From the NCBI GenBank assembly GCA_001179505.1, contig CDMY01000970.1, positions 1 through 7,596 of the forward strand: a DNA stretch of 7,596 nt. The letters run 5' to 3'. This document shows, piece after piece, positions 1-7,596 of the stretch; positions within the stretch are counted from its first letter, which is position 1, and every line of letters begins with the position of its first letter. Source of the stretch: Vitrella brassicaformis CCMP3155 (lineage: Eukaryota; Protista; Chromerida). The notes under the pieces were generated by a model. That model had not been told where the DNA came from. It saw only the letters and a list, made by a program, of their open reading frames with translations, and ran no database searches. Both the position numbers and the translations under genes were made by a program.

Positions 1-101
1 CGCTGTCTCGATCGTTGTGATGGCTGCAGCCTCACATCAGCAGCATTGATAGCACGCGGCTGAAGAACACTTCACGGGGTGACAGCATGACGGTCCATCC
101 T

Positions 102-758
102 TCATAGTTTTCGTATTCTTCCTTCCAATGCTTTGTGACGAGAGAGATGCAGTTGGCTGTCGCAATCATTGGCAGCAGAAGGAAGGAAAAGACACGAGTG
201 GCCTGACAGAGAGGGGAAATCTCTCGTGTGGGTAACTTGTGTGAGGACAGAGAGGGGCTCTGCCGACTCCAGCAGCAAAAACCACTTTTTTTGTTTGCCT
301 GCAAGTGAGTCTCGGAAGTAGACCTCTGCGGTGTCGCTGCAGAAATTGGCTGTGAGCGCCTGCACCGAGTGGACAATCAATGCGACAGTGAAGCCTGCTG
401 TGTCTTTTGGTCATTATTTACCTCCTGCCAGTTGGAAACCTTGGACAGGTCACTAAAGTTATAGAAGAACAAAAGACAAGCGATGTTCGGATGCGTGTGA
501 CATCCGATATTCTCGATTTTACTCTGTGAGGGAGTCCTTCGGTCGTGTCTTCATCAGCTTGCGGAAGACGGCACAGCAGCGAAGACTGTCGAGGCCCACC
601 GACTCAGAGTGGTCCTTTAGGAATCTCTTCGTGGAGGGCACCGCCTCCTTAAGGATCTCCAGAGAGACAGAAAGCACTATGTCTTGTTCCTCTCCTTTCA
701 GAACCACCGCCCCAGTGCAAACAAGAAACCGCACTGATCCCGCAAACTTCGACATCAG
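102..758 (-). CDS. Putative spliced host gene of unknown function, 5' end unresolved; exons 758-600, 523-422, 359-102
   Basis: Manual splicing with two short phase-0 GT-AG introns (599-524, 76 nt, GTGGGC..CTCACAG; 421-360, 62 nt, GTAAAT..GGTGCAG) joins ORFs 519..755 and 102..380 via a middle exon into one stop-free frame (LMSKFAGSVRFLV...DHSES|SKIENIGC...SNWQE|ALTANFCS...GRIRKL*). No domain recognised. Confidence 0.4.
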
Positions 759-993: not shown

Positions 994-1446
994 CCTGCAT
1001 GAGTTATGATGAATGTCTGTGTGCGCACACCTGCGCATGCACGTGGGGACTTGGAGTGTGTGTATATGATGAATGTCTGTGCGCACACCTGGAGTCATGC
1101 ACGTGTGGACTTGGAGGGCGTGTATATGATGAATGTCTGTGTGCGCACACCTGGAGTGCGTGTATATGATGAATGTCTGTGTGCGCACCCCTGCGCATGC
1201 ACGCGTCGACTTGGAGTGTGTGTATATGATGAATGTCTGTGTGCGCACACCTGCCTGGAGTGCGTGCATATGATGAATGTCTGTATGCGCACCCCTGCGC
1301 ATGCACGTGTGGATGTCGACACGGAGTGTGTGTATATGATGAATGTCTGTGTGCGCACACCTGCGCACGGACGCGTCGACGCTCGGCTCTGAGTGTGTGT
1401 ATTTGATGAATATCTCTGTGCGCACACTTTGTCTCTGTGCGCACAC
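994..1446 (+). repeat. Satellite array 1: about 8 units of the ~60-bp monomer
   Basis: The TATATGATGAATGTCT anchor (or a close variant) recurs at about 1003/1005, 1063, 1123, 1163, 1223, 1267, 1333 and 1400. Unit lengths are ~60, 60, 40, 60, 44, 66, 67 and a partial unit. The left border is uncertain (994-1005). Confidence 0.95.
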
Positions 1447-2664
1447 CGCTGCTCTCGCTATGTGTTCAACACCTACCGAGGATTCGCCGCCCTTCACCCG
1501 CAAGACTCAGCCGGCTGTCTGTGGAGCTGTGAAGGCGTCACACAGGGCGACTCCGTGGCAATGTTCGTCTACGCCTGCGGCAGCCTTCCCCTCATTCATG
1601 CCCTGCGGGCTGCCTTCGCTGAGGAGGGATATGATATGCCGTCGAGTGGGGCACGGGACGACTCGGACAGCGATGGGTCTAGATCAGATAAGGGCGAGCA
1701 CGAAAATGCGCCATCAGAAGGGCAAGAGAGGCCAGAAGAAGCCTGTGACACGCCACCAGAAGCACGGGGGGATGATGCGGGTGTGCGGGTGTGTTCTGGT
1801 GTAGAAGGTGTTGGTGTTGGTGAGGAGGAGAATTCGTCGGCCTCGTCGGCCTCTTCATCTGGCGCTTTACTGCGACACTGCTGGTATGCAGATGACTCGT
1901 CGGCGCTCGGCAACCTTCACGGCATCCTGGTGTGGTTTCGAGCCCTGCGCCGCATCGGCGCCTCATACGGCTATCACCCGGAGGCCGCCAAGTGCTTCCT
2001 CATCGTCAAACCCGAGCTCGAGCAGATCGCAAGGGAACTTTTCGAGCCCGAGGGGATGCAGATCGTCACGGGCAAGAGGTTTCTGGGCGGCTATGTAGGC
2101 GATGAGGAAGGGACGGCGGCCTTCCTCTGTGAGAAGGTCGAGGGATGGGTGCACGGCGTGCGCGCGCTCACGTCTGCTGCCCGCAACTTCTCGCACACCG
2201 CCCACGCGGCAATGACGAGGTCTCTGCAAATGGAGTTGGACTACGTCTTCCGTGTCGTGCTCACCGACGAGTCTGCTCTCAGCCCCCTCCACGAGGCCAT
2301 CGCTAAGAAGCTGCTGCCGGCCCTCCTCGGCGGCCCTGTGACGCCGTCCGAGGTCGACCTGATGCTGCTGCCTGCCCGCTTTGGCGGTACCGGCATACGT
2401 GACCATCTCGACCGAGCCGCAGCCGCATACCCCGCTTCCCGCGCGGGCACCAAAGTGGTCTCCAAGTCCATCCAAGGCAAGGCCCCTTTCCACCCTGGCG
2501 ACCATCGTGCCACCATCCGTCACGCCCTCACCCAGAGCCGGCAGCAGCAGGACATCGACCACAAAGCCAAGAGAGAAGCCGCCCTTCCCCACATCGACCG
2601 CCAGCCTCATCGCGTCCTCTCCCGCAGCGCCGAATACAAGACGTCCGGCTGGCTGACCACCCTG
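1447..2664 (+). mobile_element. CRE-clade-like non-LTR retrotransposon RT fragment (RT palm plus downstream region), truncated at both ends
   Basis: ORF 1393..2706 from codon 19: RCSRYVFNTYRG, EGVTQGD (QGD 1543-1551), WYADD (1882-1896), YGYHPEAAKC, RFLGGYVG, LPARFGGTGIRD, SGWLTTL. This motif order matches CRE-like elements as I recall them. The N-terminal RT motifs (RPIA, DxxNAFN) and the C-terminal CCHC/restriction-like endonuclease are absent. Confidence 0.85.
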
Positions 2665-2925
2665 TGCGAAAAAAGGCCGGTGAGGACCTTTCCTGTACTT
2701 AGCTGAATAGAGGATCTGCTGGGGGGTAAGTCCCAGAGTAAGAGTGCTTTTACTTTGATAAGACAGATGGACTGGCCAGTCAGTCAAAGTTGTTTCTGTC
2801 CATGTATGGCATCATGAAGGGTGGTCAACACAGATCTCACTTCGGTGATGGCTGATAAGATCGTGTCTCCTCAGAATGCTTTCCTTGTCTTTCCTTGTCT
2901 TCTCCTCTCTCCACCCGTTACACAG

Positions 2926-3077
2926 CAATATACCCTAGCTCACAAGCTCGCAGTGGTTCGTCTTGCCAAGCTGGCAATCCTGACACCCCCTCTCAAGACG
3001 AACCAGCACGGCGTGTACTCAGGAAAAGAAAATCACGAAGAAAGCACAAAGGCATCCAGAAAATGACCATTGGGTAG
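2926..3077 (+). CDS. Possible terminal exon of a host gene fragment with a basic NLS-like stretch (RRVLRKRKSRRKHK)
   Basis: A polypyrimidine tract (~2876-2913) precedes ACAG at 2922-2925, with a GTAAGT donor upstream at 2726. The reading frame is ambiguous because two frames are open. Confidence 0.2.
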
Positions 3078-3454
3078 CGAACGCGCACACACAGTGGACA
3101 AGTGCACAGATCAGCATAAGCATGAGCACGAATGGTGTGGTGTGTGCACAGATGGAACAGTTACAGCATATCACAACACATCCACGATGGCCTTCCTTCC
3201 CAAGTGACCACAACACACCAAGGAGGTACACAGATGCAGACTCATTCATCCCTTGTTGCCCTTCCACGTTTCAACAAACTCACTGCCATCTAACCCTGCC
3301 TGTAACTCTCTCACTCAGGTACTTGTGCGCTTCACGCCCAAGTCCCTTCGTGAGTATGTCAGCTATGTTCTCACTGGTACGTACGTATCGAACAGCGAGA
3401 AAGCCTGACTGAACTAGCTGACGTATGTAGTGATAACGCACGTCAATGTGTTTC

Positions 3455-3754
3455 NNNNNNNNNNNNNNNNNNNNNNNNNNNNNNNNNNNNNNNNNNNNNN
3501 NNNNNNNNNNNNNNNNNNNNNNNNNNNNNNNNNNNNNNNNNNNNNNNNNNNNNNNNNNNNNNNNNNNNNNNNNNNNNNNNNNNNNNNNNNNNNNNNNNNN
3601 NNNNNNNNNNNNNNNNNNNNNNNNNNNNNNNNNNNNNNNNNNNNNNNNNNNNNNNNNNNNNNNNNNNNNNNNNNNNNNNNNNNNNNNNNNNNNNNNNNNN
3701 NNNNNNNNNNNNNNNNNNNNNNNNNNNNNNNNNNNNNNNNNNNNNNNNNNNNNN
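3455..3754. other. Assembly gap (300 N)
   Basis: Run of N. Array 2 emerges directly from it, so the array's true size and the linkage across the gap are unknown. Confidence 1.
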
Positions 3755-4302
3755 GATCATGAATATCTCTGTGCGTGCACAGGTCGACTTGGAGTGGGTG
3801 TATATCATAATGCCTCTGTGCGCACACCTGCGCTTGCACGTTTGGACTTGGAGTGGGTGTGTATCATGAATATCTCTATGCGCACACTTGCGCATGCACG
3901 TGTCGATTTGGAAGTTGTGTATATCATGAACATGTACATGCACGTGTCGACTTGGAGTGGGTGTATACGATGAATGTCTCTGTGCGCACACCTGCGCATG
4001 CACGTGTCGATTTGGAGGGTGTGTATCATGAATGTCTCTGTGCGCACCTGTGCATGTGTGTATCATGAATATCTCTGTGCGCACACCTGTGCGCACACCT
4101 GTGCATGAGTTGTGTATATCATGAACATGTACATGCACGTGTCGACTTGGAGTGGGTGTATACGATGAATGTCTCTGTGCGCACACCTCTGCATGCACGT
4201 GTCGATTTGAAGGGTGTGTATCATGAATGTCTCTGTGCGCACCTGTGCATGTGTGTATCATGAATGTCTGTGTGCGCACCCCTGTGCGCACACCTGTGCA
4301 TG
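3755..4302 (+). repeat. Satellite array 2: same family, with its own variants
   Basis: Units carry TATCATGAATGTCTCTGTG and TTGGAGTGGGTG or ATTTGGA instead of array-1 TATGATGAATGTCTGTGTG and TTGGAGTGTGTG. Same orientation as array 1. Confidence 0.95.
3913..4302 (+). repeat. 195-bp higher-order repeat, two copies (3913-4107 and 4108-4302)
   Basis: Hand alignment gives 6 mismatches in 195 nt and no indels. Confidence 0.9.
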
Positions 4303-4304
4303 TT

Positions 4305-4320
4305 CTAAACCCTAAACCCT
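4305..4320 (-). repeat. Short telomere-type (TTTAGGG)n tract
   Basis: The plus strand reads CTAAACCCTAAACCCT, a 16-nt perfect match to a CCCTAAA array, lying between array 2 and the RT2 fragment. Confidence 0.65.
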
Positions 4321-4975
4321 TCGGCAGAGCACTTGACACCAGAAGCGGCAATCTCAGCGGGGACGTCACAGGGCTGTCGCCAATGAGGGCTCCAGGCAGC
4401 GCTCTTGTCTCGACGCAGCTTCAGCTTCTTCTCGGCCAGAAGCTGTTCAGCTCTGTCCACATACCTCGTCACACGTGTCTCGTATACTCCTCCATAGATG
4501 TCATCTATGAAAGCACCAGTGAAGTCGTCCAGGAACTCTTCCTGCAGCTTGACGAGGGCCGGATGGAGACCCAGACAGAAAAGGAATGGTCCTGCAGCGT
4601 CGCCCTGCTGAGTCCCCTCTTGACTGAGGATGGTATCAATACACGATACCACAGCTTAGCCGGGGTGCCGTAGAACTGCCAGAAGAAATCGACAAGGGAG
4701 GGCCACTTTATGCCGAGCTCGTCCAGGATCGCCTGGCGATCAATTGACTTGAAGGCCTTCTTGCAATCAAAAGTCACCAAAACACGCCGGTCCGGGCCAC
4801 CACCTTGTGTCTCGACGAACGTTTGGCATGCACGGAACAGCTTCTCACTCCCTGCCGAAGTCCCCACAGCAAACTGCAAGGGAGAGAGGTCGTCTTCGAA
4901 GGCGAGTTTGTTGTCCATGCAGACAGCTTTTGTCACCCAACGCCGCAGCACGTCACCCACAGCAATAGGTCGAAC
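4308..4975 (-). pseudogene. Second CRE-clade-like RT fragment, frameshifted and truncated
   Basis: VRPIAVGDVLRRWV (from 4975), LSPLQFAVG, FDCKKAFKSIDR (degenerate DxxNAFN, 4768-4748), FFWQFYG. A frameshift near 4640 (apparent small deletion after LWYR) leads to EGTQQGDAAGPFLF, AFIDD (FIDD at 4511-4500), LKLRRDKS and EGFRV*. The last four codons overlap the telomere-like tract. Confidence 0.85.
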
Positions 4976-5450
4976 GGAGGGATAGTTGGATTACTGCACC
5001 AGATAAAGGTGGCGATGAGGGGCAGATGCAGAGTGTGAATGGGGCGCACGACCAATGGGAGGCATCCTCGTGTCTGTCCCGAATGTGAAATGGTTGCAGG
5101 CTATGTTGGCTGTGGTTCGGAACATATGATCGTGTATTTGCTAATAGAGTCTACATAGTGTCGGGAAGGGTGGACGCCAGGAGCCTGAATCGCGCGGAGC
5201 TGACGCCCGAACAGCAGCTATCTCAGACATCTGACACGTATGAAAAGTTCAAGGGTGTCCAAATCCGCACGTACGAGGTGAGCACGACGGCAACAGGCAG
5301 GGGTACCTAAGAAGGGGGGGAGGGATCATGTGTTCTCTGATGTTATGTTCAGCGAAAGGACGACGATTAGATTCACACCGGTAAATCGCAGAGACTTGCA
5401 CTTGGGAAGACAACGGGGCACAAGGCGACTGTCTGTTTTGTTTTCATCAG

Positions 5451-5830
5451 GCGTGATAGGGCAGGAGCTGCGGGAGATTTTCGCTGACACCATTCTCGAA
5501 GAGACAGTGACAATCGAGGGCGGCGAGCCTGAGACAACCCTCTTCCTGGACGAAACGGCCCTACTCTACAGGGTAGATAACACACACCTGATGCATGGAT
5601 GTTGGGTGTGGTGGCCCTCTGTGCTTCTGGCTATGGTCCCTGCTTGTGTGATGACGTGTTGCATGCAGACAATCATTGTGGCTCAAGGCCTGCAGAAAGA
5701 GGCTGAGATCTTGCGACAGAAGGCCGATAAACAGGAGGCAGATATTGCGGCGCTTCACGGAAAGCTGAAGGCCATGACGAGGCAAATGGAGAAGATGTCT
5801 AGACAGCGGACCGCTCCCTGCACCAAGTGA
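5451..5830 (+). CDS. Putative spliced gene fragment with a coiled-coil-like C-terminus
   Basis: Within ORF 5330..5830, an in-frame 96-nt GT-AG intron (5573-5668, GTAGAT..GCATGCAG) removes an intron-like stretch to give ...DETALLYR|TIIVAQGLQKEAEILRQKADKQEADIAALHGKLKAMTRQMEKM. There is an acceptor at 5450. A possible upstream exon (~5148-5277, ending at a GTGAGC donor) could not be joined in frame. Confidence 0.35.
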
Positions 5831-6351
5831 TCGATTGATGCTCTCGTAAAGATACCTCTACTGCCCGCTTCCCGAATGCATTCATTTCTTCCCGCTACTT
5901 GTCGATTCATGTATGCATCCATGTATGCCCTTTTTTCCCTCAATGGTCCTACTTTTTCTTTTGCACGTATCATTTGTCGAGAGTGACGGTTGGAGCGTAC
6001 TTGAGTCGTCGGGGTTGACAGAGAGCTACAAAGACACCAACAGAGTGATAAGACATGTGTCTGATGTGCGTTTGGCTGCTGACTGTCCATTCAGTCGGAC
6101 AGCTATCTGCTTGATGCACACAAAGCGGCCTAGAGTCCTACTGATGGCCAGACTAATCTTCGCTTTGTGGTGGCCTGCGTCTCGTCTCGTCTCCGTTTCA
6201 AAGTGGTCGCCCCTCATGCGAACCGTGCATGTCTGTGTGGTCGCTGTCACGATGGCTGGACGTCAGGGCGGGAAGGAATTTCTTTCAGACGCACCTGTCG
6301 TTGCTTGCAGCTAGTGCCTTTTGCTTTCTCGATCTATATCTGCTGCTGCAT

Positions 6352-6927
6352 ATGAACACTAACATTGAATGTACAACCTCTGGTGAGGAACCAGGCACGA
6401 ATGCGTAGTGGGTGCAGTGTTTCTGGTTGTCATGCTTTCTTGGCATGTATGGATGCATCCATTCGTGCAGTGCTCATCTTTCAGTATCGCTTGAGTGAGC
6501 CTTGCTTTTTCACCGCTGCCTACTTTGTATCACAGAGGCGGGACACTAAGGTGAGTGCACTCAATTGATGAGGAAAAAGCGGATGAATGATGAAGCTCGA
6601 GTCAAATATGCCACGCCGTACATACATCGACAGACAGGCGCGTCTCTGTGCATGTATGCACGGACGAACGCACGCACACATGTTTATACGTGGGTATGTA
6701 TGTTGACGGCTGTCGGGGCAAATGTTGCGTTGGGGCCAGGCTTGGGTGCTGATTGTCATCGCTCAAACACACAACAAGTGCGCCGGCATGTATTCGAGCG
6801 CATAGGTACGGATGCTGTGTGTCTGCATACGACAGAAAAGCTCATGTGACTACAAGCACTCGAAGCATCGAAAAAGCACACAACGGACAGATGATGCATA
6901 ACGGACTGACTGACACCAAGACAACCA
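6352..6927 (+). CDS. Possible 5' part of a micro-exon gene running into satellite array 3
   Basis: Exons 6352-6382, 6485-6494, 6536-6550 and 6836-~6927, with donors GTGAGG, GTGAGC and GTGAGT and CAG acceptors, give the open frame MNTNIECTTSVSLEGGTLRKAHVTTSTRSIEKAHNGQ... No homology recognised. Confidence 0.25.
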
Positions 6928-7596
6928 ATACACACACTCCAAGTCCAAACGTGCATGCGCAGGTGTGCGTATACAGACATTCATCGTATACTCCAAGTCG
7001 ACGCGTGCATGCGCACGCAGGTGAGAGACATTCATCATATACACGCAGGTGAGAGACATTCATCATATACACACACTCCAAGTCGACGCGTGCATGCGCA
7101 CGTGTGCGCACACAGACATCAGGTGTGAGCAAATAGACATTCATCATATACACAGTGGACAAAAGACATTCATCATATACACACACTCCAAGTCGATGTG
7201 TGCATGAGCAGGTGTGCGCACTGTAATATTCATTGGATACACACTCAAAGTGCAGGTGTGCGCACAGTAATATTCATCGGATACACACTCCAAGTCGACA
7301 CGTGCATGCGCAATTATGCGCGCAGAGATATCTGCACACAGTAATATTTATCGGATACACACACTCCAAGTCCACACCTGCATGCACAGGTGTGCGCACA
7401 GAGACATTCATCATATACATCCACTCCAAGTACACCTGCGCATAGAAACATTTATCATCTCAACACACTCCAAATCGACACGTGCATGCGCAGGTGTGCG
7501 TACATAGACGTTCATCTTATATACCCATTCCAAGTCCAAATGTGCATGCGCAGGTGTGCGCATACAGACATTCAACATGCGCAGATGTGCGCATAG
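6928..7596 (-). repeat. Satellite array 3: reverse orientation, runs off the window end
   Basis: The plus strand repeats ATACACACACTCCAAGTCGACACGTGCATGCGCAGGTGTGCGCACA(C/G)AGACATTCATCAT, the reverse complement of arrays 1 and 2. It is more heterogeneous and contains a 28-bp duplication (7014-7069). Confidence 0.95.

Follow-up and report, generated by a model that had tools for sequence, protein, structure and literature searches.

A 60-bp satellite abuts truncated sequences in a small scaffold of Vitrella brassicaformis

Scaffold C970 of the chromerid alga Vitrella brassicaformis CCMP3155, the whole of which (7596 bp) was analysed here as the window, carries three arrays of a 60-bp satellite repeat. 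The satellite abuts sequences that are cut short relative to their paralogs, and this is real wherever a comparison exists. An earlier interpretation made from the letters alone (the sequence-only reading) had taken the satellite for a system that caps broken chromosome ends. Comparisons against the assembly (72,700,666 bp, 1064 scaffolds) lead us to regard C970 as probably a repeat-rich mosaic, the product of nested insertions, joins at short homologies and a single break healed by telomerase, in which the satellite has no capping function.

Sequences cut short at the satellite arrays

Tandem arrays were called with Tandem Repeats Finder (TRF) and a repeat finder. The features that carry the argument are as follows.

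1-1002, no strand assigned: fragment X, a truncated copy of a duplicated low-copy segment whose first ~650 bp belong to a ~40-copy family
996-1446, plus strand: satellite array 1 (TRF, repeat finder), 60-bp monomers plus 40-, 44-, 66- and 67-bp variants
1447-2663, plus strand: RT1, internal fragment of a probable divergent reverse-transcriptase (RT) retroelement, both ends cut, with ~90% paralogs that extend both ways
3755-4302, plus strand: satellite array 2 (TRF, repeat finder), containing a 195-bp higher-order unit
4303-4320, minus strand: interstitial telomere tract, G-strand GGGTTTAGGGTTTAG on the minus strand, ~2.3 repeats
4318-4975, minus strand: RT2, an RVT_1 retroelement fragment, both ends cut, frameshifted
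6928-7596, minus strand: satellite array 3, in the opposite orientation to arrays 1 and 2 and truncated where the contig stops

Six truncation junctions fall within C970, four of which involve the satellite and two of which (2663/2664 and 4975/4976) do not. The arrays had been described as sitting at truncation points, and paralogs prove the cuts at 1002, 1446 and 4318. For the left flank, two 98% identical copies of X (C929:1-968 and C738:281245-281433) run past 1002 as tgggcaggaagcg... The C929 copy reaches satellite 150 bp beyond that point, in the opposite orientation and within a common heptamer, TCATATA; the C738 copy has no satellite at the equivalent place. As the window and C929 copies of X, 98% identical, end in satellite at points 150 bp apart and in opposite orientation, the joining to satellite must have recurred. 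The left flank had also been read as a putative gene lacking a clear 5' end; its truncation stands, while its identity as a gene was not confirmed, as no X open reading frame (ORF) has a Pfam match. Window positions 3-653 recur at ~40 places at 65-78% identity (for example C209, C247, C225, C485 and C544), with several copies per scaffold and a variable stretch at 452-523 that resembles an intron or indel; this family likewise has no Pfam match.

Array 1 was said to lie directly on a cut RT1, and the paralogs bear this out. The copies on C807, C534 and C622 carry coding sequence upstream of 1446 (...LLVDASNAFNRISRPAAIWNTRVLWP/RCSRYVF...) where the window has satellite, and those on C807 and C534 also extend downstream beyond 2663. 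The C622 copy is cut elsewhere, at the equivalent of window position 2452, and is joined to satellite there. CC is common to both sides of the satellite/RT1 junction in the window, and CA, or an imperfect GCAC(C)A, to both sides of the RT1/satellite junction on C622. RT1 is probably a divergent reverse transcriptase, a call made from the QGD and YADD motifs in its ORF and an Atlas feature search (0.98 to RVT_1 clusters); neither the window ORF nor a 796-aa paralog ORF gave a Pfam match, the RVT_1 gathering score not being reached, and there was no PDB sequence match. Position 2663 as the natural 3' end of a 5'-truncated long interspersed nuclear element was rejected because the paralogs continue past it and 2664 is the terminus of another element.

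Array 2 meets the cut end of RT2 through a TTTAGGG tract, as the sequence-only reading had proposed. More than 12 paralogs of RT2 (71-98% identical) run straight through the 4318 site as ...gacagtgatg/CCTTC... The window there reads gcatgtTCTAAACCCTAAAC/CCTTCGG, where the tract tTCTAAACCCTAAAC has CC(T) in common with RT2 and then gives way to satellite. On the RT2 sense strand the junction is ...GCCGAAGG/GTTTAGGGTTTAG/AACATGCACAGG, with CCT/AGG common to RT2 and the telomere repeat. The window fragment matches RVT_1 at E=2.4e-6 with 27.8 bits against a 29.6-bit cut-off; since full paralogs score 45.6 and 49.1 bits, above that cut-off, the RT2 family is assigned by sequence to RVT_1, the window holding a partial domain. 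The closest copy (C899:9254-9576) is 98% identical. Paralogs continue past 4975, where the window switches without satellite to another block (Y, below). Positions 4318-4327 and 4975 were considered as natural boundaries of the RT2 family and rejected, because paralogs continue on both sides.

The tract is not a chance match, as in 72.7 Mb only 11 sites have GGGTTTAGGGTTTAG with a base other than G after it, and a reversed control has none. It sits exactly at a discontinuity that is absent from the RT2 paralogs, and the addition site has a short homology to the telomerase template, although three nucleotides common to the telomere repeat and RT2 are by themselves weak evidence. The RT2/tract junction thus looks like a healed break, in which telomere synthesis would have been primed on a terminal AGG and the product then joined to satellite; this would add a telomerase-healing scar to the annotation of Vitrella. 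The tract as the end of a mobile element with telomere-like termini was rejected, since none of six other TCTAAACCCTAAACCC sites compared has flanks in common with the window.

The satellite family and its relation to chromosome ends

Genome-wide, 266 or more satellite matches were found on no fewer than 28 contigs; the arrays are 0.2-3 kb long and lie mostly beside contig ends or gaps. Its consensus 60-mer, ATGATGAATGTCTCTGTGCGCACACCTGCGCATGCACGTGTGGACTTGGAGTGTGTGTAT, was derived from 81 exact 60-bp monomers of all fetched loci, and most positions are >80% conserved; the monomers are only ~80% alike to each other. Many arrays consist of head-to-tail monomers of defined length, as expected of satellite DNA, and arrays often flip head-to-head (loci L010, L018, L011 and L063). 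Within the window, array 3 is 79-97% complementary to arrays 1 and 2, and the 195-bp higher-order unit of array 2 is present in two copies (3913-4107 and 4108-4302) that are 97% identical. Repeat analysis confirmed the irregular unit spacings reported previously (28, 40, 44, 60, 66 and 67), which are produced by deletions and duplications within monomers. RT1 copies accompany satellite on small contigs C622, C743, C659, C1029 and C687, as do RT2 copies on C630, C703 and C899.

Breakpoints are spread over all 60 monomer positions, and the flanks of 46 other satellite junctions are mostly unrelated to one another. The arrays are therefore neither transposon-borne nor cut at a specific site, and a transposon-borne array with fixed ends, whether derived from a Helitron or from a miniature inverted-repeat transposable element, was rejected on the same grounds. 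A reading as structured DNA or RNA was also rejected, given a dimer fold of z=-1.8 and no tRNA or Rfam family. Literature searches, none of them aimed at the satellite itself, gave no description of it. We take the sequence for a previously undescribed family of satellite DNA, set in a repeat mosaic of an ordinary type; it adds a repeat family to the annotation of a key relative of the apicomplexan parasites.

Sampling covered ~46 satellite junctions and the 2.4 kb beside each telomere tract. (TTTAGGG)n ends 24 contigs with the G-strand outward, and a 25th array lies beside a scaffold gap (C571). Satellite was found within 2.4 kb of one of these 25 tracts (C743, 830 bp away) and not of the other 24, and no satellite array lay distal to a telomere tract at any contig end examined. 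The predicted enrichment at chromosome ends beside (TTTAGGG)n was thus not seen, and the satellite as a general subtelomeric repeat (telomere-associated sequence) was rejected on the basis of this single end in 25. Other sampled subtelomeres have different repeats in common: in loci L065-L088, blocks recur at 66-91% identity (C802 with C697, C720, C591 and C1000, for example) and are candidate genuine telomere-associated sequences of Vitrella. The word 'telomer' does not occur in the text of the Vitrella genome paper (PMC4501334), and the terminal tracts add evidence that canonical TTTAGGG telomeres cap its chromosomes.

A uniform outward polarity of the satellite had been proposed from the window, where three of the four array borders do read CATTCAT... 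outward. This is not general, however, as 46 satellite/non-satellite junctions in the fetched loci divide 26 S+ : 20 S- in outward orientation (p=0.46), and contig C1017 shows the reverse arrangement. The arrays are randomly oriented and interstitial, which the sequence-only reading had itself named as a sign against capping; the other sign it had named, intact continuous flanks with target-site duplications, was not found.

The window, C1017 and C743 are three independent places where satellite and telomere repeats come together, and internal telomere tracts are otherwise rare. On C1017 a single monomer is interrupted, without losing any bases, by a (CCCTAAA)17 block between its consensus positions 31 and 30; telomere repeats were therefore inserted cleanly at a break inside satellite. 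The relative polarity of telomere and satellite there is opposite to that in the window and on C743.

Several further telomere-like arrays were observed. In C1017:1-3000 (L064) telomere blocks occupy 1005-1123 and 1926-2100, and a ~0.9-kb satellite-plus-telomere unit is duplicated with identical junctions and a common CCCTAGA variant; no other long telomere blocks were found internally in the assembly, the array beside the gap on C571 excepted. At C743:22244-25232 (L009) the terminal telomere lies directly on unique gene-like sequence, 830 bp beyond a 1.3-kb satellite array, and this terminus may be a healed break near satellite. The C571 array (L080, C571:263400-266300) comprises 220 bp inside a 332-kb scaffold with a gap immediately after it, and is probably a mis-scaffolded chromosome end. 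A common repeated element with head-to-head telomere-like repeats (GTAGGGTTAGGGTTG...TCTAAACCCTAAACCC) is present at C725:11760-12030 (L098) and C749:23390-23660 (L099), and C340 and C347 also have inverted telomere-like motifs at their sites.

The remaining parts of the scaffold

Three further features complete the window.

2664-3454, plus strand: start of a young high-copy mobile element, first ~322 bp resembling a long terminal repeat (LTR); its insertion cuts RT1
3455-3754, no strand assigned: assembly gap (300 N) that opens within the young element, with unsupported linkage of its two sides
4976-6927, no strand assigned: block Y, low-copy, with a diverged and rearranged paralog on C899 and no protein evidence

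Matches to the young element lie at 183 or more candidate places, 94-99% identical, and many of them cover only bases 1-322. Five other copies (C952:6248, C234:106829, C515:46994, C511:86497 and C458:19947) start at the same base, GTGCGAAAA..., with unrelated DNA upstream and a sharp terminus GTGCGAAAA(A)GGCCGGTGAGG. RT1 was thus cut at 2663/2664 simply by the insertion of a transposon. By their sequence, the first ~322 bp look like an LTR and many copies behave as solo LTRs would; these solo-like copies and the sharp common terminus were seen, and ORFs within the sequence read have no Pfam match. In the C952 copy the element runs on beyond the position at which the window turns to Ns, and on C234 a gap opens 7 bp beyond that same internal position. 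The right side of the N gap begins in mid-satellite, and no reading frame crosses it. With its left side in an element of at least 183 copies and its right side in mid-satellite, the gap is a repeat-induced break, and continuity across it is therefore unsupported. It shows where this short-read assembly cannot be trusted, and the published transposable-element estimate of 1.5 Mb may be low, since such copies break the assembly.

Array 3 had been thought to begin inside a putative exon (6928). This was not confirmed, as the Y ORFs give only DUF1003 at E=0.015 in Pfam, and homology to the C899 paralog is lost at 6843, 85 bp before the array. That paralog reaches satellite ~950 bp after the loss of homology, in the opposite relative orientation. 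Y starts at an identical base (GGAGGGA...) at window position 4976 and at C899:6653, in a 91% paralog with different neighbours, and base 4976 may mark the terminus of a unit that is mobile or was duplicated.

Origin of the mosaic and comparison with known systems

If C970 is a repeat-rich mosaic, it would represent heterochromatin-like DNA with degenerate satellite among broken retroelement copies and recently duplicated low-copy segments. Nested transposon insertion explains the cut in RT1 at 2663/2664. At the other borders, broken satellite may have been joined illegitimately, through short homologies, to any available end or template, by end-joining or replication template switching; junction homologies span 2-7 nt and are compatible with either homology-mediated joining or template switching. 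A break within RT2 would have allowed telomerase to prime on ...AGG, and later joining of that end to satellite would have left the 2.3-repeat scar. The satellite itself would be merely abundant, break-prone or recombination-prone DNA of these regions. Its meetings with telomere repeats, the clustering of RT copies and the differing cut points fit break-prone, repeat-rich DNA where telomerase sometimes acts. Arrays 1 and 2 have the same orientation and may be one array split by insertion of a 5'-truncated RT1 that was later hit by the young element, a possibility whose test the N gap hides.

Several points weigh against this account. The 98% identical copies of X, and likewise the 98% RT2 pair, differ in where they are cut and contact satellite, and such recurrence is more than would be expected if the satellite were wholly passive. 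Homologies of two nucleotides differ little from chance, and for arrays 2 and 3 neither side of any empty site was seen. The order of the C970 pieces through the arrays and across the N gap may not be real, because the assembly was built from short reads (velvet k=75, SSPACE), and these data place C970 on no chromosome.

The recurrence would be explained if the satellite were a preferred partner in break repair (a 'repair sink'), with ends, including telomerase-started ones, recurrently joined to satellite or copied from it by short-homology template switching. This would account for near-identical copies of X and RT2 that end in satellite at differing breakpoints, and for satellite being the sole setting of long internal telomere blocks. 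If true, this would link satellite DNA, telomerase healing and segmental duplication in one genome; we consider it a long shot. Alternatively, the satellite may be a resident matrix, for instance centromeric or pericentromeric, into which retroelement cDNAs (complementary DNAs) and ectopic segments were inserted at breaks or by template switching, so that the inserted pieces rather than the satellite would be the patches. The common orientation of arrays 1 and 2 on either side of RT1 and the young element agrees with this, as do the perfectly in-phase telomere block on C1017, three of seven other same-orientation spacers that lie within 9 nt of in phase, and the co-clustering of transposable elements with satellite on small contigs. 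Array 3 is inverted relative to array 2, however, most spacers are out of phase, and nothing places the arrays at centromeres. Four near-in-phase spacers of eight, C1017 included, do not go beyond chance, and with C1017 the only exact case, fragments as in-phase insertions into arrays were rejected. We hold the matrix explanation to be quite unlikely. The satellite would matter more if it proved to be a centromeric repeat or a recurrent repair partner.

An assembly artefact, with C970 a chimeric path stitched from contigs of different loci through the satellite and the 300-N gap, is unlikely but carries a real chance, and single junctions might exist even so. The assembly was made from Illumina short reads with short inserts, using velvet (k=75), SSPACE scaffolding, GapFiller and IMAGE (PMC4501334); the gap adjoins satellite and interrupts a repeat with 183 or more copies, C234 is broken at the same position of that repeat, satellite arrays lie mostly at contig ends or beside gaps, and the C571 telomere array is followed by a gap in a probable mis-scaffold. 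A k=75 graph, on the other hand, cannot join satellite to non-homologous sequence without spanning reads, monomers only ~80% alike would not have been collapsed, and like junctions are seen again, each at another site, on contigs independent of C970 (C622, C929 and C703:21458). The original proposal was of a dedicated break-capping or patch satellite of fixed polarity, an alternative or adjunct to telomerase, whose capped ends were later internalised by fusion. It draws on the four satellite-associated junctions of six in the window, the three outward-reading borders of four, the two breakpoints at which paralogous X copies meet satellite and the tie to telomere repeats at three loci, among them C743 at 830 bp from a true telomere. 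Against it stand the (TTTAGGG)n at 24 contig ends, the 24 of 25 tracts with no satellite within 2.4 kb, real subtelomeres with other repeats in common, the 26:20 split in orientation, and the absence of any array ending a contig beyond a telomere tract. On C1017, moreover, the polarity is opposite and telomere repeats were inserted into satellite rather than the reverse. We judge such capping to be highly improbable, and no new end-protection mechanism is revealed.

Primate pericentromeric duplication mosaics are comparable patchworks of satellite, transposons and duplicated segments. Short shared junction sequence, inversions and independent breakpoints are also characteristic of microhomology-mediated break-induced replication (MMBIR), fork stalling and template switching (FoSTeS) and microhomology-mediated end joining. 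C970-type junctions are alike in their 2-7 nt of homology, inverted orientation and independent breakpoints in near-identical copies, although the pathway is suggested by junction sequence only and 2-nt homologies are weak evidence for it. In Chironomus, complex repeats stand in for telomerase repeats at the physical ends of chromosomes, with a fixed polarity. Any likeness of the satellite to these or to the HeT-A/TART/TAHRE telomeres of Drosophila (PMC6581046 for Drosophila) is superficial, consisting of a non-canonical repeat beside broken or terminal sequence together with retroelement pieces. The Drosophila elements likewise replace telomerase repeats and occupy physical ends with fixed polarity (PMC6581046), whereas Vitrella has terminal (TTTAGGG)n and an interstitial, randomly oriented satellite; a capping system of the Chironomus or Drosophila type was therefore not borne out.

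In mammals, telomere repeats are inserted at sites of double-strand-break repair, or are left where a chromosome end was healed and later rejoined (PMC2246262, PMC7215372; review PMC6410037). The window resembles these interstitial tracts in having few repeats exactly at a junction, in the uninterrupted sequence of paralogs that have no tract and in the AGG/CCT point of addition, and on C1017 the monomer resumes after the insert precisely where it had stopped. Unlike the mammalian tracts, that of the window does not interrupt a single sequence but links RT2 to satellite, which are unrelated; the C1017 block has some length (~17 repeats) and is duplicated together with ~0.9 kb of satellite, and the host is a chromerid alga with TTTAGGG repeats.

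The heterochromatic mosaics of Drosophila and plants (review PMC8909793) differ from C970 in their setting, as the Vitrella genome is compact, with a published transposable-element total of only ~1.5 Mb (PMC4501334), the arrays seen are at most 3 kb long and C970 is unplaced on chromosomes. In composition the two are alike: short satellite arrays are interleaved with truncated, nested retroelements and with duplicated pieces of sequence that also occurs elsewhere (91-98% identical in C970), alongside orientation flips and poor assembly (PMC8909793).

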